NCBI RefSeq assembly: GCF_902652985.1
Contig: NC_047017.1
Location: 46,376,001 to 46,440,000, forward strand
Length of the DNA: 64,000 bases
Origin: Pecten maximus
Lineage: Eukaryota
Direction: 5' to 3'
Shown: positions 2,201 to 52,900 of the stretch, piece after piece
Position numbering within the stretch: position 1 is the stretch's first letter
How the letters are laid out: the number at the start of each line of letters is the position of its first letter
Position numbers and translations under genes: made by a program
The notes under the pieces: generated by a model
What the model was told of the DNA's origin: nothing
The model's database searches: none
Seen by the model: only the letters and a program-made list of their open reading frames with translations

Positions 2201-5200
2201 ATGTGGAACCAGAAAATAGTCGTTCCTCCCATTGTCTGCAACATGAAGACCACTGTAACAGCAAATAACAAGGGTATGTTATTACAAAACTACACAATTA
2301 GTCTTTATTTTGGCCTCGGGCCAAGTTTGTTTTTGTACTACATAAACGACATGCCCCAACTGTATAGTTGAGTGTAAGCTAACTTTGACATCTAGTGTAC
2401 TACGTTTAAACTAGTAGTGCACTACATTTAAACTACAGGTAAACTAGTAGTGCACGACACCCTAAGAGATGATGAACAGCAAAACCCCCATACAGGTAAT
2501 GGGCAGTACCCAAGGCTACCTGTGATTTTTACCTGTACTGTACATATATAAGGCTATCTAGCACAGGTACTTGGGGTAAGAAATTACATTTGTATATATA
2601 TACTATATAGCCTCGTATTACTATATAAAAGTAATACGAGGCTATATAGTATATATATACAAATGTAATTTCTTACCCCAAGTACCTGTGCTAGATAGCA
2701 GTTATATTCAAAGAGCTATTAAAAAGGTTTTGCAAGTTTAGTTTGATGATAGATTTCAACCTTTCTATTCTTGTTAATTATGCACTGTAACTTAAGACAG
2801 ATTTACTTTAGAAATCCTTTAACTAAGTTAAATTGTTCAAGCCAAGTTTCATTTATCTTTTGGTACTTTATATTTTGTATTGATTAATCAGTTATATATT
2901 TCACATGTTTAATTCCAGTAATTTTGTTTTCATCACATGAAAGTATATAATAGTACATTTGAAAACAATTATCGTTACTTGAACATTTTCAATTTGATAC
3001 ATTTAATTTTTATTGTAGTTTAATTTCAGATTAAATTAAGCAGCATATTCATAATTTCATTTTTATGTGATGTTATGCTTATTAAAACCTAATTCAGCCC
3101 ATAATATATGTTGTACATTCTATGTGTATACATCCAATGCTTAAAGTCAGAAACCTGAACACATTAGGAAATTAACTAAACCTTGATTTAACATGTAAAG
3201 AAAGAGATTCTTTGAATGTACTGGTAATTAAGTGATCATAACAGTTCTACATTTCAAAATTTTAAGTTTATAAAAGGTATATGTTACTTGTAAAACACCT
3301 TCCATTTTCCTTTACTGAAATAGTTGAAATTTCTGTACATGTACCCGTGTGCAGGTATCTAGTACTTTGAAGATCTAACATATTGGATCTGATTCCAGGT
3401 ACATGTATCAGTTACAGGTAACACAGAATGAGATAATGGCCTGAGGGAACAATTAATTAATGTCATTTTTGTTATGAAATACATATAAGGCAAACTTGGG
3501 GAGGGGAAGGGCAACAATTTTAAGCTTATATAACACACATACATGTTCATGTCATACAACACTTGTATTTATAATTTCATAATTTTCTTCTATAAAGTTA
3601 CCTGCTATCAAATATATTACATACACATGTGGATCATGTGGACCTTATTAAGCCAAATTTTTTTTTTACAGTTCATGCTAACATGTTTTTCGGCATAGCC
3701 GTATAATTTTCTTTTGGCATGCTTTTGGCCTCGGATATGACGCGACAGGTGGCGTTACTTGTCAAGATGAAGTATGTGATTGGTCAATGTAGCGGTAAAT
3801 GCAAAATGCAGATATGTAGTTAAAAAACGAAACAAAGTTAAGATTTAATGCAAGATGATTAAGTAGATTATCTTTTTAAATGACACATTAATAAAATCAT
3901 ATTCCTGATTCAAATGCGTTTTTATTATTACCAAAAATGATTCAAACTGATATAATTTTGTTTTCGTGCTAAAACGCTTTAGTTCGTACTTATTTCCCCA
4001 TCAGTTTTACATTATAACCATCAGCATTAAAACTATGCCGTTTATCTTTTTTATAGATATTTCTTGTTTGCAATATTGTTTGAAAAAAATAATTTTGGGA
4101 TACATTTTGATCAGCATTTAAGTGTTTCCCTATTGCATTAAGAAAATGATTAACTGTTCATTACCTTAAAATGTATAACTGATGGGGATTTTACCCCTTC
4201 TTGTAATTAAAGAAAATCAGCATATAAACTATATTTATTGAATATCTTTATTGAGAAGAAAAATGTATATAAAAATCAATTATTTTTGGATGATTTGCAA
4301 ACAAAAATAAACTATGAAGTTTTGAAAAAAAACATCCACAGGTAGATATCATATATGGGTAGTGTTAGATGCTAATTACAGGTAGGTAAGGCAAAGGAGC
4401 CTGGCACAGCATGCTATAAATGGCCCCTGGGGGTAATTGGGAACTTGACAAAACAGGCACACCTAAAAGCTTAAGACTGATCCTCAACATCATACATATA
4501 TATTGGGCTGTAATATCTCCCCGACACTTTTTTCTATATACATCAATGACCTTGTGCATGACATAAATGGTCTGAACTGTGGCATACCGGTAGATAACAT
4601 TTACATTTCACTCCTCCTATACGCCGATGATATCGCGCTGATGGCCCCGGATGAACACTCTCTCCAACGTATGTTAGACAGTCTCGGCGAGTGGTGTAGA
4701 AAGTGGCGCTTACAGGTTAATCAGTCAAAAACCAAAGTGATTCACTTCAGAAACCCGTCGGTGCCTCAATCTCTCGTGAGCTTTACCTGTGGCGACCTTG
4801 ACATTTCGACCGTGGACCGTTATAGGTACCTAGGACTATGGTTCACTGAACACCTTGATATGACTATTACTGCACGTGAACTCTCAAAATCAGCGGGTAG
4901 AGCTTTATGTGCCCTATATACTAAATTTATACTAGCTGGTGGAATGACATATTCAGTTTTTAAATCATTGTATGAATCGCTGGTTGAGCCTGTTTTATTT
5001 TACGGCGCGGGTATATGGGGCCTAAATACGTACAAGTTTATACAAACTGTTCAAAACAGAGCATGTAGATACTTTCTTGGCTGTGGAAAAAAACGCATCA
5101 AATATCGCAACGCGTGGCGACATGGGCTGGGATTCCTGTATGGTGAAACAAAAACTTGAAGTGTGTAGATTGTGGCTAAGACTTCGTAGTACAGAAATGG

Positions 5201-8200
5201 ACAGAATAACGTATAAGATACATGCATGGTCTCTGTCTACTCCAAAGAGTTGGGAAACCAAAACTAAGAAATTTCTCCAGGATCGTGATCTTACAGACTT
5301 TTTAATACATGATGTTGATAAAATTCATTGTTTAAATATTGCTAAAATAGTATTAAGTAATGAGGATAGAGGAAACTGGTATAGAGATTTATGGAATGAT
5401 ATTGGTAATGAGAACGGAAACAAACTTAGAACTTACAGAAAGTATAAATATTGTGTTACACCTGAATATTATGTCACCACGATTATCAGTAGGCACCACC
5501 GTAAATGTTTAGCGAAATTTCGCTGTGGTAACTTAAAATTGAATATAGAGACCGGTCGGTACACTGTTCCAAAAACTCCATTACAAGAACGAGTTTGTCG
5601 ATTATGTAGTTCAAACCATATTGAAGATGAAACTCACTTCCTGATTGATTGTGATTTTTACGATGATTTAAGAAATACTTTGTTGGAGCAAGCAGGAGTG
5701 TTTAGTCCTACTTTTTTTGAGCTTGACTCCCAACATAAACTTATATATTTAATGAATAATAATGCACTACAGTGCTCATTATCATCTGTTTTATATAAAA
5801 TGTACAGAAGACGGCAATGCTTTTAAGGGTGAGATATTTTAGAAATTGTGTCAGATTTATCTGATTTTATCATAGTTGAATATTTTATGAATTGGATCAG
5901 GTTTATTGTGCATTTTAAAATTGTAATATATTGTAAGCAAATGTGACAATACTTTAGAATATTTTAGCATGTATTTCTTAAATTTAGTTAATGCATAGCT
6001 CTTATTAGATGATGATATGACAGTGTCTCATAGGTCGAAATCGGCCGGGATTCAAATGCGTTTTTATTATTACCAAAAATGATTCAAACTGATATAATTT
6101 TGTTTTCGTGCTAAAACGCTTTAGTTCGTACTTATTTCCCCATCAGTTTTACATTATAACCATCAGCATTAAAACTATGCCGTTTATCTTTTTTATAGAT
6201 ATTTCTTGTTTGCAATATTGTTTGAAAAAAATAATTTTGGGATACATTTTGATCAGCATTTAAGTGTTTCCCTATTGCATTAAGAAAATGATTAACTGTT
6301 CATTACCTTAAAATGTATAACTGATGGGGATTTTACCCCTTCTTGTAATTAAAGAAAATCAGCATATAAACTATATTTATTGAATATCTTTATTGAGAAG
6401 AAAAATGTATATAAAAATCAATTGTTTTTGGATGATTTGCAAAAAAAACAACAAAAAACCTATAAAGTTTTGAAAAAAAACAACATCCACAGGTAGATAT
6501 CATATGGGTAGTGTTAGATGCTAATTACAGGTAGGTAAGGCAGAGGAGCCTGGCACAGCATGTTATAAATGGCCCCTGGGGGTAAATTGGGAACTTGACA
6601 AAACATGCACACCTTAAAAGCTTAAGACTGATCCTCATATCATACATACATATATGTAGGTAAGGTGTTATGGAGGTCCATAAAGTGGTGCCACTGGTGG
6701 TAAGGTGGGGTTTGGGGCCTGGGGCCCAGGGGGCCATGACAACAGGCATGTCCTGAGAGTACCAATTATACATACAGGCACATTTACATAAGTATATATC
6801 TTGTTGTGTAGATATTATGTCTCTTACAAAACATAAATGAGGATATACAAAACTTCTGATTCTTGATACTTGATTATGTACTATGCAATGATTTCATGGT
6901 TGAATTAACAGATATTAGTGAAATAACAATACATTGAATTTAAAAATATTTTTGTCTGATAAAATACAAAGTAATAAATATCAAAATATATATGTACAGT
7001 GTACTTGAAAAAAAAAAATCTACAGTCATCAAGGCCTAAGGTAGAATTAATCATTAATATAAAATGTATAATAATTACAACTAAAAAAAGAATAAATGAA
7101 AAGCATAGTATTGATTCAAAATTTTGAAATCAGAAAGATAAACCTTAATTATACACTAAAATGAAATCTTAAAAAAAAAAATAATGATGAAAAAACCCAC
7201 TACAAATCCAATTGATAGAGTTTTAATTCCCCTTGTGCAATATATCATATAATAACCGCAGCCAATTTTATTTTGAGTTAGTATTAGATAAAATTTTATC
7301 AACATTTAAAAGATATATATAAGGCAGTCAATTCATGATCACGAGTGTAGGACAAAAGCCCCCCCGGACATTAGCCCCTAGGACAAAAGCCCCTCCGGAT
7401 GAAAGCCCCCCCCAGACATTTGCTAAAAACATATATTGAAATTAAAAAAAAAAATAAAATGAAAAAATAAATAAAAAAAAAAATTTATGAAGGGGCTTTT
7501 GTCCATTTTTTGATTAGTGTGAAGGGGCTAATGTCCGGGGGGGGGGGGCTAATATTCAGGGGGGGAGGGGCTTTTGTCCGTACCTCCAATTTACACAGGT
7601 CTGTATATGTAACAAATACAGGTATCTAACACATGTACAGGTGCCTATTGGCACTGTCCATTACCTGTATAGGGGGATTTGTGGTCACACCTGACTGGAC
7701 GTAGTGCACTACTAGTTTACCTGTAGCTTAAAGGTAGTGCACTAGGGTGTAAAGGTTAGCTTACACTCAACTGTATCTCTACCGAGATACTGCCTCAGTT
7801 AGGTTGGACGTTGTTTGCCAATGATACTATTGTGTACATCACGGTTAAATCCACTGAAACGTCAAACTCTCCGCAGAGTGATATGGATCAATTAGCAAGA
7901 TGGGAAAAACTCTGGAAAATGGAATTCCATCCCCAGAAGTGCAAGTCCTATCAATTACAAAAAATAAAACCCATCTGAAATTTAAATATTATTTACACAG
8001 ATATTGCCTTAATTGACCATACTGCTACATTTGTAAATCTAAATACCTACATGTAAATGTAGGTGTCACTGTAGCCGGGTTCAGTGCTACACAAAACATC
8101 ACACAGATGTAATTCTCGGTTCAATCTTTTATTGGACGGGAACAACAGAAGAAGACCTCTGCTATAACATAAATAAACATAAGAACACTACGGTACATTA

Positions 8201-11200: not shown

Positions 11201-14200
11201 TTGATATTATGCCTGATAATCTATTATAGTGTTGACCTTGATGATAACGCTGCATACCTGCCCTCCAGACAGATGTTAGAGTTTGTCCTTGTGAGACTGA
11301 TGGGTATGGCAGCCCTGTTAACCCAGACCATGGCATATTGTGTACACACCTTCATGTATCCTTGGCATTTCCTAATGATGAAAATTGTAAAATCTTTAAA
11401 ATACAAAATGTACTCCCTCATTCTACACTGTAATATTAAAAAAATGATTTAATGTATTTCAGTACATCTATGTACATGTATATTAAAAATGATGAGTGTC
11501 TGTTTATTATAATTAATTTTTTGCTGTTTGTATGTAAAATGCTGCTTTCTAATTCATCATTTTTTTTCTTTTCATACTTCTATGGGTAAAACAAAGATTT
11601 AAGCTCTGCCCTCTTGATAATGATTGGAGGAGTCTATGGCAACACGCCACCTGGCTAAAGTACTTTTTCGTGACTGAAATTCCTGTTTACTATATATACT
11701 CTTGTTTATACACATGCAATGTGCTTTGCTCACTGTCTGTCAATGTTGTGAAAAAAGCAAATTGCAACAACCTTAAATATTAGCATACCAAAAAGAAGAA
11801 AAATAAAACAATGAGGCAGTTATGACTTTTTCATGATAAAATCAGTTTCATATTTTCACACATGTTGAACTGGGCTTACGTCATCAAAACAAAAGGTCAT
11901 CTGTTTACATGTATGAGGTATGCATTCGACTCTTAAGACTACAGAATGAAGACAAAATACCTGGCATGTATGCAATATGATCTCCGGATCTTCAAAAGTG
12001 ATGAGACCCCCTCTTGACTGACGTATATCGCACGAGAGGCCACGGAAGGGATATTTGAATGTTGTGATTTGTCAAAAAATAATCCGTAATTTCACTTTTT
12101 GAATTGATGGATTTCTACATCAGTTTTTGTTTTTCTGTTGTAATTAAGAAATCAATCATAAGCTTTGATGTAAATATTTTCTAGTTTCGTAGGGATATGA
12201 AAAAAAAATTGTCTGAAAACTTTTGTAGGTACAAATGCACGGATTCATACAGTTTGCAAGCAATTTTGTTTTCATATCCCTATGAAACTAAAAAATATTG
12301 ACATCAATGCTTAATTTAAACAACCAATCACAGCTTGACTCTAAAATGGAATAATACCATATTATCCTTGACATGACCACTAGCACTGTTCAACATGATC
12401 TGGAGATAGGTATCCTCATCCCACAGTCAATGCTCTTCTTGTCTATAATCAGCCGGATATGGTAAGTACATTTTTACCTTATAAAATGATTTAAATTGTA
12501 CTTTCAGAAATTGTTACATGCTCCTATCTTCCAAACTATGTAACTTTTTAAGTGATATCTGTTTTGATTTCCAATGATTTCATGTTGTTTTTTGTTTTTT
12601 TTTGTAGATGTTGTTTCAGTAACAATTACCATGCTTGCTTACCATGGCTATTTAGAAGGGCAACTCTCAATTTTGAACACTTTAGAGTTTAGATATGAAT
12701 TATCACTATATTTGCATATTGTTACGTCATGTTGATATAGTAGTAGGGACTAATATCATTTTACTCTAAATACTAACCAGATGCAGACATCTATTAATTA
12801 GCTGACCAAGTAATATTTTGGTTGTGTTCGTAATATAATTAGGATCTTAGATGAGTTTTTGATTTCATATGAGATTTTATGAAACAAGTCTTAAAGCAAG
12901 CGAAGCAAGCAAACTTACTAGTGACATGCAATAGATATGCTCCATGGGTGAATTGAATAATTTTATAACAGGCCAATTATGTGCTAAATACGACAGTGTT
13001 GAAATTCTAATGAGAAAGAGGCAATTGTATATTACATGTAACTGTGCAACAGCTGGATGATCAAGTTACCTATGAATTTTATAAGAAACCTATTCTGAAA
13101 TGTACTCATGTAATATGTACATTGTAATTAAACAATTTAAATGAAATACTTTATTATCAACAAACTTCTGACATTTTCATTATGATCCACAAACTTCTTA
13201 CATTTTCATTACTGGTATCAACAAACTTCTTACATTTTCAGGATTTTGAGTAACTCTACCTGTATATATATGGTCACATGGTACAACTCGCTACAAAAGT
13301 GCATGGACCATTTGGAACCTACACAAGTTGTATGGGTAAGTTCAGACGTGTTTCATTTATCCACGTGTGACTACAGTTTTGCCTTAATTACTCTACTTGA
13401 CACTGGAACTTCATACTTTGGGAATGGGTTAACCATGCAGGGTGAGATATAGTGTATAGTATTAAGTCTAGTAACTTGACTAATTATCTTGTTAAATCTT
13501 GTTTTAATTAAAATAAGCCTTCCATTGTTACATTTTAACACCACCTGTTGTCTGCCATATTTGAAATAAAACATTCTTAAGGCTCCTTAATGCATTTGAA
13601 TATTTAGTTACATGTACAAATGTATAATTGAGTCTACTGATTAAATAATAACTTAACTGAGGACAATATATATGTATTCTTCCCAGTTTCGATATAGGAT
13701 ATACATGTATACGTATTTCATGTACACATAACAACACCAAAAGATTTCAGTTCTCTTAGAATTTTACAAAAATAATTGAATTTTGCTATTTCCTTTAAAA
13801 CTATATATATTACAAACACAAAATGATCAAATTATTATCATCATGAAATATTTTGAAAAATAATTTCAAGCAAAGTTTTGTGATAATCTGTCTTTGTTTT
13901 ATTTTCATGCATCGATTTTGGGACCTCCTGGACATCATTTTTGGTCAATTTTTTTCATGTACAAAATATGCTAATAGAATGTTTTTTCCAGCATTTTCAG
14001 CCCAAAAAAGTACCTGCATAAATTACACATTTGGGCAGGTTACACATTATTTTTACCGTTGTGATTCTGTAAATACTGGAATTATTATGAAAATTTGTAG
14101 TTTGACTAGCTTAATTAGCTGAACGAAATTTGTAGCTGCCGCCATAATTTATGTACATGTATATATATATTATTACACCTTTAAATGTTTTGACATACAC

Positions 14201-45480: not shown

Positions 45481-47944
45481 TAGTAGTGCACTACACCCTA
45501 AGAGGCGATGAACAGCAAAACCCCCATACATGTAATGGGCAGTACCCAAGGCTACCTGTGATTTTTACCTGTACTGTATATATAAGGCTATCCAGCAGTT
45601 ATATTCAAGCGGAAGTAAAACCCATAAATACATAGAGTTATTAAAAAGGTTTTGGAAGTTTAGTTTGATGTTATATTTCAACCTTTCTATTCTTGTTAAT
45701 TATACACTGTAACTAGGTTAAGACAAATTTACTTTATAAATCCTTTAACTAAGTTAAATTGTTCAAGCCAAGTTTAATTTATCTTTTGGTACTTTATATT
45801 TTGTATTGATTAATCAGTTATATATTTCACATGTATAATTCCAGTAATTTGGTTTTCATCACATGAAATATATAATAAAACATTTGAAAACAATTATCGT
45901 GACTTGAACATTTTCAATTTGATACATTTAATTGTCATTGTAGTTTTAATATCAGATTAAGTTAAGCAGCATATTCATAATTTCATTTTTGATGTGATAG
46001 TACGCATATTAAAACCTTATTCAGCCCATAATATATGTTGTACATTCTATGTGTATACATCCAATGCTTAAAGTCAGAAACCTGAACACATGAAGAAATT
46101 GATTAAACATTGATTTAACAGGTAAATAAAGAGTTTTCTTTGAATCTACTGGTAATTAAGTGATCACAACAGTTCTACATTTCAAAATTTTAAGTTTATC
46201 AAAGGTATATGTTACTTGTAATACACCTTCCATCTTCCTTTACTGAAAAAGTTGAAATTTCTGTACATGGTACCCGTGTGCAGGTATCTAATACTTAGAA
46301 GATCTAACATATTGGATCTGATTCCAGGTACATGTATCAGTTACAGGTAACACAGAATGAGATAATGGCCTGAGGGAACAATTAATGTCATTTTTGTTAT
46401 GAAATACTGGCAAACTTGGGGAGGGGGAGGGTAACAGTTTTAAGCTTATATAGCACATATACATGTTCATGTATCTGTAGCTCTACTTGTCATACAACAC
46501 TTGAATTATACAACACTTGTATTCGTAATTTCATAATTTTCTTCTATAAACTTGCCTGCTAACAAATATATTATAAAACATATGGATCATGTGGACCTTC
46601 AGTTTTTTTACAGTTCATGCTAACATGTTTTTTGCAATATTGTTTAAAAACAAAATTTTGGGATACATTTTGATCAGCATTTAAGTGTTTCCCTATTGCA
46701 TTAAGAAAATGATTAATTGTTCTTTACCTTAAAATGTATAACTGATGGGGATTTTACCTCTTCTTGTAATTAAAGAAAATCAGCTTATAAACTATATTTA
46801 TTGAATATCTTTATTGTGAAGAAAAATGTATAAAAAAATAATTTTCTTTTTTTGGATGATTCACAAAAAAAACAAAAACAAAACAAAAACAAAAAAAATA
46901 GACATTTTTGAAAAAACATCCACAGGTAGATATTATATATGGGTAGTGTTAGATGCTAATTACAGGTAGGTAAGGCAGAGGAGCCTGGCACAGCATGCTA
47001 TAAATGGACCCCTGGAGGGTAATTGGGGACTTGACAAAACTTTCGCCAGGTGTTAAAACAGGCACACCTTAAGACTGATCCTCACCTGATACATGGTGTT
47101 ATGGAGGTCCATAAGGTGGTGGTGAGGTGGGGTTTGGGCCCTGGGCCCCAGGTGGCCATGACAACAAGCATGTCCTGAGAGTACCAATTATACATAAGGT
47201 ACAGGTATATAACTTATTATATGTCTCTTACAGCACATAAATATAATTATATTCGAAACTTAAGATTCTTGATTATGTACTATGAAATGATTTCATGGTT
47301 GAATTAACAGATATTAGTGAAGTAACAATATATTGAATTTAAAAATATGTTTGTCTGATAAAATAATAAATATTAAAATATACATACATATACAGTGTAC
47401 TTGAGAAAAAAATCTACAAACAGTCATCAAGGCCTAATGTAGAATTAATCATTAATATAAAATGTATATTAACTACATCTAAAGAAAAATGAAAAGCATC
47501 AAAATTTTGAAATCAGGAAGATAAACCTTAATTTTACACTATAATGAAATCTTTTCAAAAAACATATTGATAAAACCCCACTAAAAATCCAATTGATATG
47601 AGTTTTAATTCCTGTTGTGCAATATATCATATAAGAACCACAGTCAATTTATTTTCAGTTAATTTTAGATAAAATTTTATCAACATTTAAATATACCTGG
47701 TAAAGTCAGGATGACAGAAATAAGGCAGTCAATTTACACAGGTCTGTATATGTAACAACTACAGGTATCTAACACAGGTGTCCAGTGGCACTGTTCATTA
47801 CCTGTATGTGGGGAATTTGTGGTCACACCTGACTGGACGTAGTGCACTACTAGTTTACCTGTAGCTTAAATGTAGTGCACTACTAGTTTACCTGTAGTTT
47901 AAACGTAGTGCACTAGGGTGTAAAGGTTAGCTTACACTCAACTG
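45481..47944. mobile_element. Second copy of the non-autonomous TIR element (outer left TIR missing, no nested inserts)
   Basis: Collinear with 2445-7773 once the inserts are removed. Intact right end ...GTTAGCTTACACTCAACTG followed by TA. Confidence 0.9.
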
Positions 47945-48411
47945 TATGTCTAGTTCTAGATCTCAGTTGGAAAGAGCAAAATTCAAAGGTCTCATTTCTA
48001 TCGATGATTTCAATTTTCTAACGCCCGCGCGATCAGTCTACGAGGAAAACGAATTACACAAAATGATTTTTGCTAACCGTACCACTCGCGACGTATGGTT
48101 TAATATGAATAGAGTTCTCGGCGATCTATTGTTATAGGTACAAACATTAGTATGTACATGTCAATTAAGAATCAAAAGTGCTGTACAGATATATATATAT
48201 ATATAGAATAAAAGTGTCCATGTGGAGGTAAATAATAATAAAATTAGGGGATAGTAAGTTGTTTTGAGTGGCTATACTGGCGATTAGAACATGAAATTTG
48301 GTTTGAACTCGAGACCGATAGGTCGAGAGTTTAAACCAAATTTCATGTTCTAATCGCCAGTATAGCTACGAAAAACAACATACTATCCCCATTCTAACAC
48401 GTTTACGTTAT

Positions 48412-49960
48412 AGTTATTGAATAGCATTACGAGTGTATCCGAAATATTTGTTGAAGGGGCGGGTACGAGGCGCGTCAGCGCCGAGTCCCCCGCCCCTTCA
48501 ACAAATAACTCGGGTACACGAGTAATGATTTCAATAACTGGCTTGTACCATGGCACCTCCCACTTTGTGTCAATCAAATTCTAGTTCCTTTGTCATTGAC
48601 CAATCATATTCGACCGCACCCGCTTTCTCACGGTGAGATTCTGCAGTACGGAAATCATCTGTCAAATTCCCACGTTGCGACACAGTACATGTACCATAAA
48701 CTTTCCAATAGGAGAGTTGTTATTTAGAAAAGATGTCGGATTTGGGCGCAGCGAGAGATCGACATAAAGAATATCAGACACTACAGTAACCAAGGTGAGT
48801 AAAATATATAAGAATTAGAAACACTAGACTATTTGTGAACTATTCTATTCACTAATGTGTTAATCCTCAAATCCGCAGTCCGCATTCATTAATTATAAAT
48901 GTACTGCTTATACTGTCTCGCAATAGTTTTATTACCATCAATGCACTTTTAAAAGCTTTCAAAGAAAAACAGCCGCTTAATTTTAACTGTATATTATTAT
49001 TATCACAAGTTTATAATGAAGTATTCTAATATTTAGATCTTAACCATTGTAGGTGAACGCTGCATAGTCGATTTGTATGAGAAGTACCTGCAGGCCCTAG
49101 TCTCTGGGAAATTCTACAGGCGCGCATTACCTGGCACACCTCCGAGGTTTGGGAACCAACCGGTAGGAGTTAATAAACTGAGAAATCTTATGAAAATTAT
49201 TTGTGCAGGCGCGGGATTAAGTGGAAATTATACCAATCATTCGGGAAAACGCACATGCGCAACACAACTCTACATCGCCAGGGTTGATGAGCAGGAGATC
49301 ATGAACAGAACTGGACATAGGTCAGAAAAGGCTGTGAGAAAATACAAGTCAGCTGACGAATCGGTGTTACGCAAAGTATCCTCGGTGTTAGATCCTCCAC
49401 AGAAAAGAAAACGTCCCGAAAACAAAACTCACCAAGAAGAGCCCACTGCCAAACGTGCTACAGTGCCTCTCAGTGATATAAGTTATCTCCCGACAGGAAG
49501 TCTTTTTAACAACTGTCAAGTTACTTTTAATGTCGGAAACAAGTGACCTTTTAAACGATTTTTGAAGACGTGGCATAGTGACATTAGTGTTTATGATTTT
49601 TAAGAAGACATCGGGTATAGTCTTATAACCTTTAAATTGTTTGTTTATAATTTTGTAAACAAATATTACATGTATTAAAAATGAAATAAACAGATTTTTT
49701 GTTTGTTTTTCAAAATGAACAGTGTTGTAATTTGCATCTTGATTGTAGCGATTTTTCTCTGGGACATGACTGTAAATCGATACATAAACATTGTTTCAGT
49801 CTTACTGTGAAAAATAACTTGGAACTTATTGCACAGCTAGGCTCCACCCCAATCAATGTATCGGGGTAGTTAGTGTATGCCTAGGCTCCGCCTCTTCTCG
49901 GACTATCGAGATTTATACAACAGTCAACTTCAAAGAAAAATAGCCGCAACCATGGTACAA
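48412..49960 (+). mobile_element. Inner Crypton-type element (internally deleted) carrying a tyrosine recombinase fragment
   Basis: A 128-bp hairpin (48412-48539) is followed by TTGTACCATGG (48543-48553), with its exact reverse complement CCATGGTACAA at 49950-49960. Contains the DUF3504 coding exons. Confidence 0.78.
48733..49546 (+). pseudogene. Crypton-type tyrosine recombinase (DUF3504, ZMYM/QRICH1/KCTD1-related) C-terminal half, spliced and 5'-deleted
   Basis: Exon ...AQREIDIKNIRHYSNQ, GT-AG intron 48795-49052, then GERCIVDLYEKYL...FYRR...QPVGVNKL..LMK.IC..AGLSGNYTNHSGKRTCATQLY...DEQEIMNRTGHRSEKAVRKYK. There is no in-frame start, and the box I arginine region is missing. Confidence 0.88.
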
Positions 49961-52900
49961 TATCGTATATATTTAGAAACATTGTTTTACAGTGCTACAA
50001 CTACGCTGTTAAGTACTATGTGACCTCCGTTAGTGACGTGTCATACTGTGGCGGATTGACCAATCAGAGAGAAGCTATCAAAGTCGGTCAATTGGCCACG
50101 CCCATACTGGCGAGAGCTCGGTCTGTATGTTAACGAAGCGGGGTATTTGGATTGTTGTGAAAGTCCTGTTTCCGAAGATTTAAAGACATATTTGGATTTA
50201 CGCAGTATGCTTAACGACATGTGCATTTTAACAAAGTCAGGGTTGATGTGTTTCTACAGGCTCAACCGTTATGTGAAGTTGTGTGCACTTGTTCCATTTC
50301 ATTTCGGATTTTACTTGACCTTAGATGCTTACACACGGACGAAATGAACGTTTCAATCAATAAATGACGGTAAGAATGATGTTAACGATTTTCGTTAAAT
50401 TTATTAAGTTAATTCATTCTATTCGATTTCTTCACTTTCGATTCCAATATCACGGGTCATAAATCATAAATGGTGCAGAGTGTTGAATTTCGCTACGAGT
50501 CGAACTTGACGCCATATTGTTTTGATTAGAAACGGGGCGTGGCTTAACACGATATGTCATGGTTCTATCGCAGATTAGAAGTCGGTCCGCAACCAATCAA
50601 AACACGCGTTGCAAACGAATCGTGTTAGAATAAAAAGTATAACACAGATCTGCTGTCTCCCTCGTACTTTCGCGGCTATATCGTGCCGCTCTTCAGGTGA
50701 ATCCCCTATATATAGGCGTAGCTACTATGTAAGTACCTGATCTATAAATAGTAATGGAAATACCAGGGGCTGCTGATCAAAACCTCATTACAGTTCGAAA
50801 TATCGACTAGATGCCTACGGGGTCGCAAGATGGAAGGACCACCTAAAGTAATATACATATATGTGTAGGTATATATATGATGTTTAAGTGATTTATTGAT
50901 ATTTAAGAATAATTCTATATTGTTTTCTTTATATATACTGTTCGTTTTTCAAACGCCTTCTCAATTTCTAGCACCAGTTTTTAATTCTTAATCAAGATAT
51001 TGCAAAAATAAACAAAAATCTTGTCAAAAAAGAGCTGACTATCAAACGCAAATGTGTAATCAAGGGAGGAGACGTTTATAATTTTCAATACTTGGCTTTT
51101 AACAAAAGTAAATAAATGAATCCAAAAATCTTGACATTAACACCTGTTTGGAAATTTACCCTACGATTTTATGTAATGCACAGAATGGTTTATAATCTTC
51201 ATTGCTTACTTTTCTTTCCGTTTATATTTGATAACTTTGATTAATAGATGTCTTGAATTCTCGTAGAGTCTTCTATAACTGTCTATAAATCTGTACGCCC
51301 GGGGTTCTCTATTGTTTCCAGCTCCAACTCTTTCTACCATTTTTCTGATTTCCCTTTCCTGTAGGATAACAGGCCTTTATACATACACCAAACATCTGTT
51401 TTACACTGTTGACATCACATACAAAACTTACCTGCACGAGTAATACACTCTGACAATAGCTAATGACGTCACAATTAATCTTTGAACAGACTCACCTTAA
51501 GCATTGGAGATCAATATGAATCCATTTCTCAGAAAACTGACTATATCAATTATGTTGGTGGATTCCGTAAACCTGCATGTCGTGTTTGGCTTTCCTACTC
51601 GTAGATGCATCTGTTCAGAATGAATATACACTTCTATCTCCTCATTTTTCTTTGAAAACTATATATAAGGATCCAATGCCTACGAGATTGGCTATCTAGT
51701 GTGTTAATACACATCCCAATGCACCATTTAAGGTCCACTCATTTGGTCGCTGAAACACTTTTTCTGTTATCCTTGTATCTATATAAAGTAACAATAGTTG
51801 ATTCTTGGATATGATCTGTCATTAATCTGCTGATGATGATTTAAAGGCCCAGTTGTATTCATAAAGTAGATGTAGTTGCGAGATGATAATATGCGTTAAT
51901 GTTTTGCTTTCGGAAAGATACGGAGTAGTCGTAAGTTTCCGACGAGATAAAAATAACCTTGGGAATTTCAGAAAATATTTATATTTAGACTACGGCAAAA
52001 ATATCGCTTAATGATACTTCTATTGCATTATTAATGTATGTATATAATTATCCTTATTCGATAACAGTCGATATACCAGTTATTAGTAGAGTAGTTAAAC
52101 TCTGTAGTGTGCAGCGAAAGAAACGACAAAAACACAATAATACCGAGAATCCACATCGGTTAATGTGATGAAAAAATTGAAACTATTTATAAACGCGTAT
52201 ATGGCTTACAGTGTAATAAATGGAGATCAAAATAAGCAAACGAATAACCTCATCTTTCGTCATTGGATTATTTAATCGAATGTATCGAGTAATCAAGTCA
52301 AAATGATTATTTATATATACATGTACGTGCATGTAGTTGTTTTGTATAAACACAGTTTGACGAATACAAGGTAGTGTAGTAACATTCCTTTCATACGATG
52401 AAGATCTATTAAATATTAAACGGATCAACGACCCTGGCATTGACGTACAATATATGTAGTCATGACCTTCAAACCAGAAATCCCAGAGAAAGCTTGGTAC
52501 AAAAAAAATGTATAATTTCACTCAATTTTAAACAGAACTGTCGTATCTGTACTTCCTTAATCTTTTCTTATTAACAAATAATCGAAATTTGATACACCTA
52601 TAGGTAAGAACAAAGCAGAATCTACGAATGAAATATCGGGAAAAAAATATAGCGTGAAATAGTGATAAAAACCTTTAATAGTTTATATCCAAAGAAGATG
52701 CCTGTCTCAAAATCGTCCATGTCCAACTAGGGACCAATTTAATGAGGACTAACAAAGTATTGGGGAAAGATCTTTCTAGTACTTAACGAAAAAAACATCT
52801 GGTAAAGGGCGATTTAACTAGTCTACCATTTGATTTGATGTCTCTATCTGCCTGTATTGTTCGGATATAACCGTACTTTGTTAAGTTTATCTATTAAACT

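Follow-up and report, generated by a model that had tools for sequence, protein, structure and literature searches.

What moves two nested, hairpin-capped repeats of which only the inner one carries a recombinase gene, and that one broken? The question is raised by a stretch of 64,000 nt from Pecten maximus (NC_047017.1, positions 46,376,001 to 46,440,000 of the forward strand; hereafter the window), in which an outer element is split by an inner element of different sequence (Table 1). The setting is that of the Cryptons, the least understood class of eukaryotic DNA transposons. We consider it highly probable that both elements belong to one superfamily of Crypton-type transposons moved by a tyrosine recombinase (YR) of the DUF3504 class, and that their ends in cis consist of a 5' hairpin followed by a short motif, with the motif's reverse complement forming the 3' terminus. 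In animal Cryptons no terminal repeats, direct or inverted, were found even across 50 copies (Kojima & Jurka 2011, PMC3212892), flanking repeats and boundaries were not identifiable in the 2026 study of Glomhopper (PMC13465315), and a survey from 2025 describes Cryptons as hard to classify for want of conserved structural features. The only Crypton seen transposing, CryptonF-1_cRei, has a terminal motif that resembles its target (CACCG compared with CAYCG; PMC9977147). Set against these published descriptions (2011–2026), the hairpin/motif ends and the conserved CGAG/CGAG loops reported here appear to be new for animal Cryptons.

The two elements follow one asymmetric plan: a hairpin of about 130–145 nt that begins 0–5 nt from the 5' end, an 11-mer, the body and, exactly at the 3' end, the 11-mer in reverse complement. 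The outer element is non-coding and has about 300 copies in P. maximus, whose assembly (918 Mb, 3983 contigs) was searched for copies; genome-wide, the 20-mer marker of its 5' end gave 285 matches, that of its 3' end 328, and the reversed controls 0. Positions 48244–48406 run straight into 49961–50631 in uninterrupted copies, and in 29 copies the homology begins at TAGGGG and ends at GTTAGAAT (50631), with a 1-nt (T) ambiguity at each end. An empty site for this family is provided by one copy (L007), the joined flanks of which recur as an exact 24-mer in a repeat at a paralogous locus (L071); the comparison shows no target-site duplication (TSD) and nothing lost. For the inner insertion, the uninterrupted outer copies themselves are the empty site and read ..CGTTTAC/TATCG.. 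with no duplication, the inner element having split the outer at 48406/48407, between ..CGTTTAC and TATCGTATA... Judged by these two empty sites and their exact joins, neither element makes a TSD. The inner family comprises about 10 copies, all of which span GTTATAG (48407) to CCATGGTACAA (49960); three are full-length at 2.44 kb (L061:3939-6380(-), L062:2009-4442(+) and L063:3964-6378(-)). At the first of these, contigs of three independent runs, one of them from a second organism label, diverge exactly at both ends.

Table 1. Features of the nested elements in the window, and terminal motifs at related recombinase loci
Feature	Position	Strand	Remarks
Outer non-autonomous element, TAGGGG...GTTAGAAT	48245..50631	+	835 bp when uninterrupted; split here by the inner element
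Outer 5' hairpin	48247..48390	+	70-nt arms, 90% complementary
Outer post-hairpin 11-mer, ATTCTAACACG	48391..48401	+	Kept in 285 genomic matches of the 20-mer spanning it
Outer 3' terminus, CGTGTTAGAAT	50621..50631	+	Exact reverse complement of the outer 11-mer
Inner element, GTTATAG...CCATGGTACAA	48407..49960	+	1554 bp; internally deleted, non-functional copy of a 2.44-kb Crypton-like element
Inner 5' hairpin	48412..48539	+	Two CGAG/CGAG loops
Inner post-hairpin 11-mer, TTGTACCATGG	48543..48553	+	
Inner 3' terminus, CCATGGTACAA	49950..49960	+	Exact reverse complement of the inner 11-mer
Recombinase exon 1 remnant	48733..48794	+	Start codon at 48733; deletion breakpoint 48746/48747
Phase-1 intron, GT..AG	48795..49052	+	258 nt; matching 258 nt in L061 at 4843-5100
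Recombinase exon 2, C-terminal catalytic half	49053..49546	+	NHSGKRT, GHRS, tyrosine of VRKYK
L070, L071 (Pecten family 2)			Motif TTGTATCATAGATG..; 46% protein identity; intronless; two-copy homology starts 5 nt before the hairpin
L072 (Saccostrea echinata)			Motif TTGTGACACGAC
L073 (Pinctada imbricata)			Motif TTGTATCATTGC
L074 (ENA assembly)			Motif TTGTACCATGG
L076 (Mytilus trossulus)			Motif TTAGAACAT..
L078 (S. cucullata, two copies)			Motif TTGTATCATGGAT
L075 (Branchiostoma belcheri)			Motif TTAGAACAT; 3' terminus ..CCATGTTCTAA
L077 (B. lanceolatum)			Motif TTAGAACCCGG; 3' terminus ..CCGGGTTCTAA
L079 (second ENA assembly, ERZ18545484)			Motif TTCTACCAT; 3' terminus ..ATGGTAGAA

These alignments bear on a preliminary description of the locus, made from the letters alone. 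Its nested pair with a shared asymmetric plan is confirmed by the 48406/49961 join and by the copies, the outer 11-mers that it paired are the real termini and are conserved among copies, and copies and empty sites now fix the ends of both families. Some positions had to be moved: the outer element starts at 48245 rather than at 48247, the inner 11-mers do form an exact pair, but the one after the hairpin lies about 2 bp from where it had been placed, and the inner insertion is found 5 bp past the outer 11-mer, not about 10 bp inside the outer motif at a TATA site.

Could the hairpins instead be independent palindromes, comparable to miniature inverted-repeat transposable elements (MITEs), that came to lie beside the elements by chance, with accidental 11-mer pairs? 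A single exact inverted 11-mer pair within a few kb is near expectation (about 0.06 pairs per hairpin for an 11-mer starting no more than 30 nt from it), and unrelated palindromes also occur in the window, at 2553–2699 and 12159–12313. Because a lone pair is near the chance level, the ends were tested on other genomic copies. There, about 300 outer and about 10 inner copies keep the hairpin, the motif and the 3' end as one unit, this layout is seen again, in unrelated sequence, at 11 of 11 YR loci, and control hairpins have neither motif pairing nor CGAG loops. Coincidental MITE-like hairpins are ruled out by the copy alignments, which leaves this explanation with virtually no probability.

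The link to an enzyme comes from the inner family. What had been recognised in the window as a DUF3504 YR fragment is what remains after about 890 bp were lost internally at 48746/48747; the deletion also causes a frameshift, and this copy is dead. Its exon 2 still matches Pfam Phage_integrase (5.5e-6). Between the same hairpin/11-mer ends, the three full-length copies hold an intact two-exon recombinase, with QRICH1 and DUF3504 domains in an intact exon 1 of 320 aa and the C-terminal Phage_integrase motifs in exon 2; the two exons of this family were searched separately, whereas whole-protein searches used P0001, the product of a family-2 gene that has no intron. The intron of the L061 copy is missing exactly from contigs of two probable RNA runs and retained in a DNA run, which indicates that the inner-family gene is transcribed and spliced. 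Deletion derivatives of the family arise repeatedly, and at least one is transcribed: the deletions in exon 1 vary by copy, from 681 bp in the transcribed one (L061:5301-5983 in run X7) to about 890 bp in the window and about 680 bp in others. Contigs of run X6 (organism B) hold the inner family at 95–99% identity and with the same ends (compared with L061:3939-6384), and this organism could be a close relative or the case could be one of horizontal transfer.

The preliminary description had raised the question of whether intact recombinase genes always lie between such ends. At all of the 11 recombinase loci examined, a hairpin stands upstream, followed by the motif, a gene on the same strand and, downstream, the reverse complement of the motif, which was counted as the 3' terminus where copies define the terminus. 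The plan is thus strictly associated with an intact YR gene over divergent families and species (Table 1). In P. maximus, DUF3504/YR loci number at least 150. Full-length coding copies measure 2.1–2.4 kb and hold one gene with QRICH1, DUF3504 and Phage_integrase domains and neither a reverse transcriptase nor a second type of transposase, and the genes next to them are unrelated. Across families, the paired motifs are about 9–32 nt long and the hairpin arms 30–90 nt; all termini end in ..AA, that of the outer family included if its 1-nt ambiguity is resolved in this way, and the last 30 nt at the 3' end are still recognisable as conserved among Pecten, Saccostrea and Pinctada despite protein identities of about 45%. 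The earlier proposal that the locus connects an orphan hairpin repeat with its mobilising YR is therefore borne out for the inner family, in which an intact YR lies between the same ends, while for the outer family it holds by analogy: this family is non-autonomous and presumably moved in trans, by an enzyme that the shared architecture would assign to it.

The protein itself points to a known group. The 459-aa open reading frame of L070 matches 'zinc finger MYM-type protein 2-like [Pecten maximus]' at 100% identity, and the best PDB relative is the QRICH1 structure 9hjt. DUF3504 domains have been domesticated into ZMYM2-4, QRICH1 and KCTD1. On the evidence of the Pfam DUF3504 match and the relation to 9hjt, the elements would fall in the CryptonA/DUF3504 group of Cryptons. 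With that group they share a single YR gene with a DUF3504/Phage_integrase fold, the lack of a TSD, the occurrence in molluscs and chordates, and an excess of non-autonomous over autonomous copies. They differ from it in the long 5' hairpin, the motif pair of about 9–32 nt, the G·A loops and, in most members, a lysine in place of the second catalytic arginine (Arg II).

A different origin of the ends could be considered, in which the elements are of the Helitron2/Helentron (HLE2) rolling-circle type on the minus strand, moved by a Rep/helicase encoded elsewhere, and the YR is a captured passenger. Read on the minus strand, they have the canonical HLE2 order of terminal repeat, body, terminal repeat and 3' stem-loop (PMC11417382, PMC4067079). 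They share with HLE2 elements and HINEs the asymmetric ends, in which a stem-loop borders the outer side of one of the short inverted repeats, as well as tandem copies and the lack of a TSD; Helentrons are common in bivalves. Terminal inverted repeats of 11–18 nt with a stem-loop outside the right repeat, an HLE2 trait, are likewise found on the minus strand, but with stems of 30–90 nt. HLE2 stems measure 5–10 bp and lie 8–35 bp from the end, whereas the arms here are roughly tenfold longer and sit at the very end, at a distance of 0–5 nt. In addition, HLE2 inserts between T and T, with terminal T runs, whereas the flank logos of 29 outer and 10 inner copies show no T^T on either strand, and the elements have no T runs at their ends. 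No Rep/helicase is present in any of the 11 coding loci; all of them carry an intact YR in one fixed orientation across phyla, even where protein identity falls to about 38%. A passenger would not be retained like this. We hold the rolling-circle explanation to be very unlikely and retain the YR as the mobilising enzyme.

If the elements are moved by their YR, the form of the joined ends becomes relevant. Joining the 3' to the 5' end lengthens the palindrome in every family, the order being 3' motif, a bulge of 2–5 nt, hairpin, 0–5 nt and 5' motif, and seven exact head-to-tail junctions of the outer family (CGTGTTAGAAT/TAGGGG) are present in the assembly. In the second ENA assembly (L079:2915-6399), a non-autonomous, an autonomous and a non-autonomous element form an array, the first two exactly head-to-tail and the third 20 nt further, and all three have identical hairpins and ends; the arrangement recalls a cassette array. 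The suggestion made earlier that circularisation would create an att-like site gains indirect support from the seven outer junctions, the extension of the palindrome in every family and the strand-specific CGAG/CGAG loops.

These loops emerge from a comparison of the hairpins. Folded as single-stranded DNA, the outer 5' hairpin reaches −66.2 kcal/mol (z −19.5 against shuffles) and the inner −51.0 kcal/mol (z −12.0). The hairpins of different families have no sequence relation; their imperfections are nevertheless conserved. When all 13 element hairpins are folded as DNA at minimum energy, nearly every 2x2 internal loop sets CGAG opposite CGAG: GA faces GA in 21 of 25 such loops, mostly as CGAG/CGAG, in which C:G pairs enclose two adjacent G·A mismatches. 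In the context 5'-pyrimidine-GA-purine-3', tandem sheared G·A pairs are unusually stable in DNA. Each hairpin usually has two CGAG loops, the first about 16–24 nt away from its foot and the second on either side of the apical mini-hairpin. In the inner hairpin they are formed by 48430-33 with 48519-22 and by 48466-69 with 48482-85; in the outer hairpin a CGAG/CGAG loop flanks the apex (48310-48313 with 48324-48327), accompanied by a GA/GA loop close to the foot. The gene-sense strands contain about 47 CGAG words compared with 4 CTCG, where a true palindrome would give equal numbers, and the sense-strand hairpin is stabler than that of the opposite strand in 12 of 13 cases. CGAG loops are absent from 13 control hairpins in the same loci, and the one other hairpin that has them itself shows the full plan. 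Compensatory substitutions between the arms keep the stem (six pairs, in the L055/L057/L059 subfamily of the inner hairpin). In duplex DNA the CGAG words are direct repeats at mirror positions, and in a folded strand they become a two-fold motif that tells the strands apart. The conservation of the CGAG/CGAG loops and their absence from the controls favour the view that a folded strand is recognised, as happens at integron attC; judged from these predicted folds, the loops would make sense only in that form.

The target sites provide a second line of evidence on the exchange. The flanks of the outer family (26–29 sites) read T-A-W-T / N5 A-T-A; allowing for the 1-nt T ambiguity, the target is an AT-rich palindrome, TAW / N6 / WTA, whose 6-bp centre receives the insertion at its left edge. 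The inner insertion in the window (TAC/TATCGT ATA) and most other inner sites match this pattern. The target TAWT resembles the terminus GAAT, so that, as in CryptonF-1_cRei, the target resembles the element's own terminal motif (here ..AAT and TAWT); CryptonF differs in having flanking repeats of 5–6 bp and no reported hairpin, whereas the shared motif here is only 1–3 nt. The target centres are not homologous to the element, and yet 29 of 29 outer copies have a single fixed start and end point. A staggered two-strand exchange over a heterologous spacer should place half of the progeny in an alternative junction class, which is absent in these 29 copies. Fixed junctions and the absent alternative class suggest that one strand is exchanged and replication follows, and the lack of a duplication fits such a resolution as well.

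The main alternative for the mechanistic part, a possible one, is that the YR acts as transposase on ordinary duplex DNA, with the short inverted motifs as binding arms and the hairpin as a spacer, a promoter or a platform for accessory proteins (the Goodwin/Crypton double-strand model). This is the standard mechanism of YRs; the left half of the target resembles the 3' end of the element (AWT and AAT), for which CryptonF-1_cRei again offers a parallel (PMC9977147), and in three families the terminal motif is similar to the hairpin foot, so that two 11-bp halves around a 6-bp spacer would make up a canonical core site at the joint. However, the target spacers are unlike the element although there is a single junction point, and flanking direct repeats of 4–6 bp are missing. 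The hairpin arms drift freely, yet they stay complementary. Their only conserved imperfections are the CGAG/CGAG loops, which as direct repeats in duplex DNA are awkward for a symmetric dimer, whereas in the folded strand they form the two-fold G·A motif. We judge the duplex mechanism to be unlikely, albeit with an appreciable chance of being correct.

Based on the folds, junctions and targets described above, we propose the following hypothetical multistep mechanism, in which (i) joining of the ends, in a circle or a tandem, would complete an interrupted palindrome of 125–190 nt, the two short motifs pairing at its foot; (ii) the joint would lie at the outer edge of the 3' motif, beside the bulge of 2–5 nt; (iii) the YR would recognise this joined site in folded form, as a hairpin or a cruciform, with the G·A loops marking the correct strand; and (iv) the YR would swap one strand with the target, after which replication would complete the reaction, as proposed here by analogy with integron attC x attI or CTX phage attP x dif. 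With integron attC and the CTX phage attP(+) the elements share an imperfect palindrome that is complete only in the circular form, unpaired positions that set the strands apart, a YR, and a fixed junction with no duplication; the insertion of adjacent members in arrays (L079 and the outer-family tandems) is a further likeness to integrons. In contrast, the host is eukaryotic, the recombinase is encoded by the element, the hairpin is twice as long, and tandem G·A mismatches take the place of extrahelical bases, so that the likeness would be one of functional analogy. With somewhat less than even confidence, we put forward that a widespread clade of animal Cryptons, found in bivalves and amphioxus, transposes via a folded hairpin in which G·A mismatches mark the reactive strand and one strand is exchanged, as a eukaryotic counterpart of the integron attC and CTX-type systems.

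Several observations weigh against this interpretation, some against the identity of the enzyme and some against the folded substrate. In an alignment of 14 homologues, R240 (in GLRGxDEH), K286, H359, H385 and Y393 are conserved, with R240, H359 and Y393 invariant, but the position of the second catalytic arginine, located by alignment to XerA (5hxy), is a conserved lysine (K362) in 13 of the 14 sequences; arginine stands there in P0079, the clade of which keeps it. Since Arg II of the R-H-R-Y tetrad is a lysine, activity of the recombinase is presumed from recent transposition. The lysine is common to the Pecten, oyster, mussel and amphioxus proteins. Within-family dN/dS values of 0.37–0.71 between copies are uninformative, as expected for copies that decay after insertion. 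For the outer family, pairing the coordinates of its 5' and 3' markers revealed no autonomous partner; markers 5.7 kb apart on the same strand (C4:29390358-29396083) define one long copy, which has no DUF3504 match; it represents a nested insertion or, alternatively, a candidate autonomous partner. In the other species, the 5' boundaries are taken from one copy each, save for L078 and L079. The junction 24-mer of the inner family, the rarer of the two, which spans the joint CCATGGTACAA/GTTATAG, has 0 matches in the assembly, and the Logan contigs of four runs contain no go-back joints indicative of circles; as contigs drop rare forms, the missing circle junctions are not evidence against circles. 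Alternatively, proteins could bind the CGAG words as directly oriented sites on duplex DNA. Finally, a canonical duplex core site at the joint (11 bp, 6 bp, 11 bp, with the hairpin foot repeating the terminal motif) was rejected as a general feature, being significant in only 3 of 10 families, and for these three it counts in favour of a duplex substrate.

As long as the ends of animal Cryptons had no recognisable structure, non-autonomous copies were nearly impossible to classify and the mechanism was untestable. The combination of a hairpin with CGAG/CGAG loops, a motif and its complement at the 3' end offers a sequence diagnostic and concrete sites in cis, and the plan ties an orphan hairpin repeat of 300 copies to a class of enzyme. 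Detectors designed for Helentrons may misfile such repeats. If the proposed mechanism holds, the CGAG/CGAG hairpin signature would assign many orphan palindromic repeats, possibly including some Helentron-like annotations, to Cryptons. The ends also provide oligonucleotide substrates for asking whether a eukaryotic YR acts on folded single strands, and the ancestral DNA substrate of DUF3504 bears on the domesticated vertebrate proteins.

Two other palindromes in the window were considered as members of the superfamily and rejected. The one at 2553–2699 has 70-nt arms that are 100% complementary and a 7-nt loop; it is a copy-specific perfect palindrome without CGAG loops inside another repeat of about 400 copies, the others of which join 2563 to 2690, and it may be a local inverted duplication or an artefact of long-read assembly. 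The second, at 12159–12313, is an imperfect hairpin of 155 nt (63-nt arms, 87%) without CGAG loops or a convincing motif pair and is a different kind of palindromic repeat. Rfam gave no RNA family in 47500–51500. A 33-bp unit is repeated three times in tandem at 47839–47937, roughly 300 bp upstream of the outer element. At 4503–5826, two open reading frames of 218 and 249 aa overlap and resemble part of the reverse transcriptase of a non-LTR retrotransposon. Outside the window, a 1.19-kb non-autonomous element of the same plan (L070:4182-5370, 3' end ..GTCATTGGATAA) has inserted, with no duplication, into the 3' region of a family-2 Crypton, and another of about 440 bp (L071:1540-1983) lies just upstream of a further family-2 copy; members of the superfamily often land in or beside one another.

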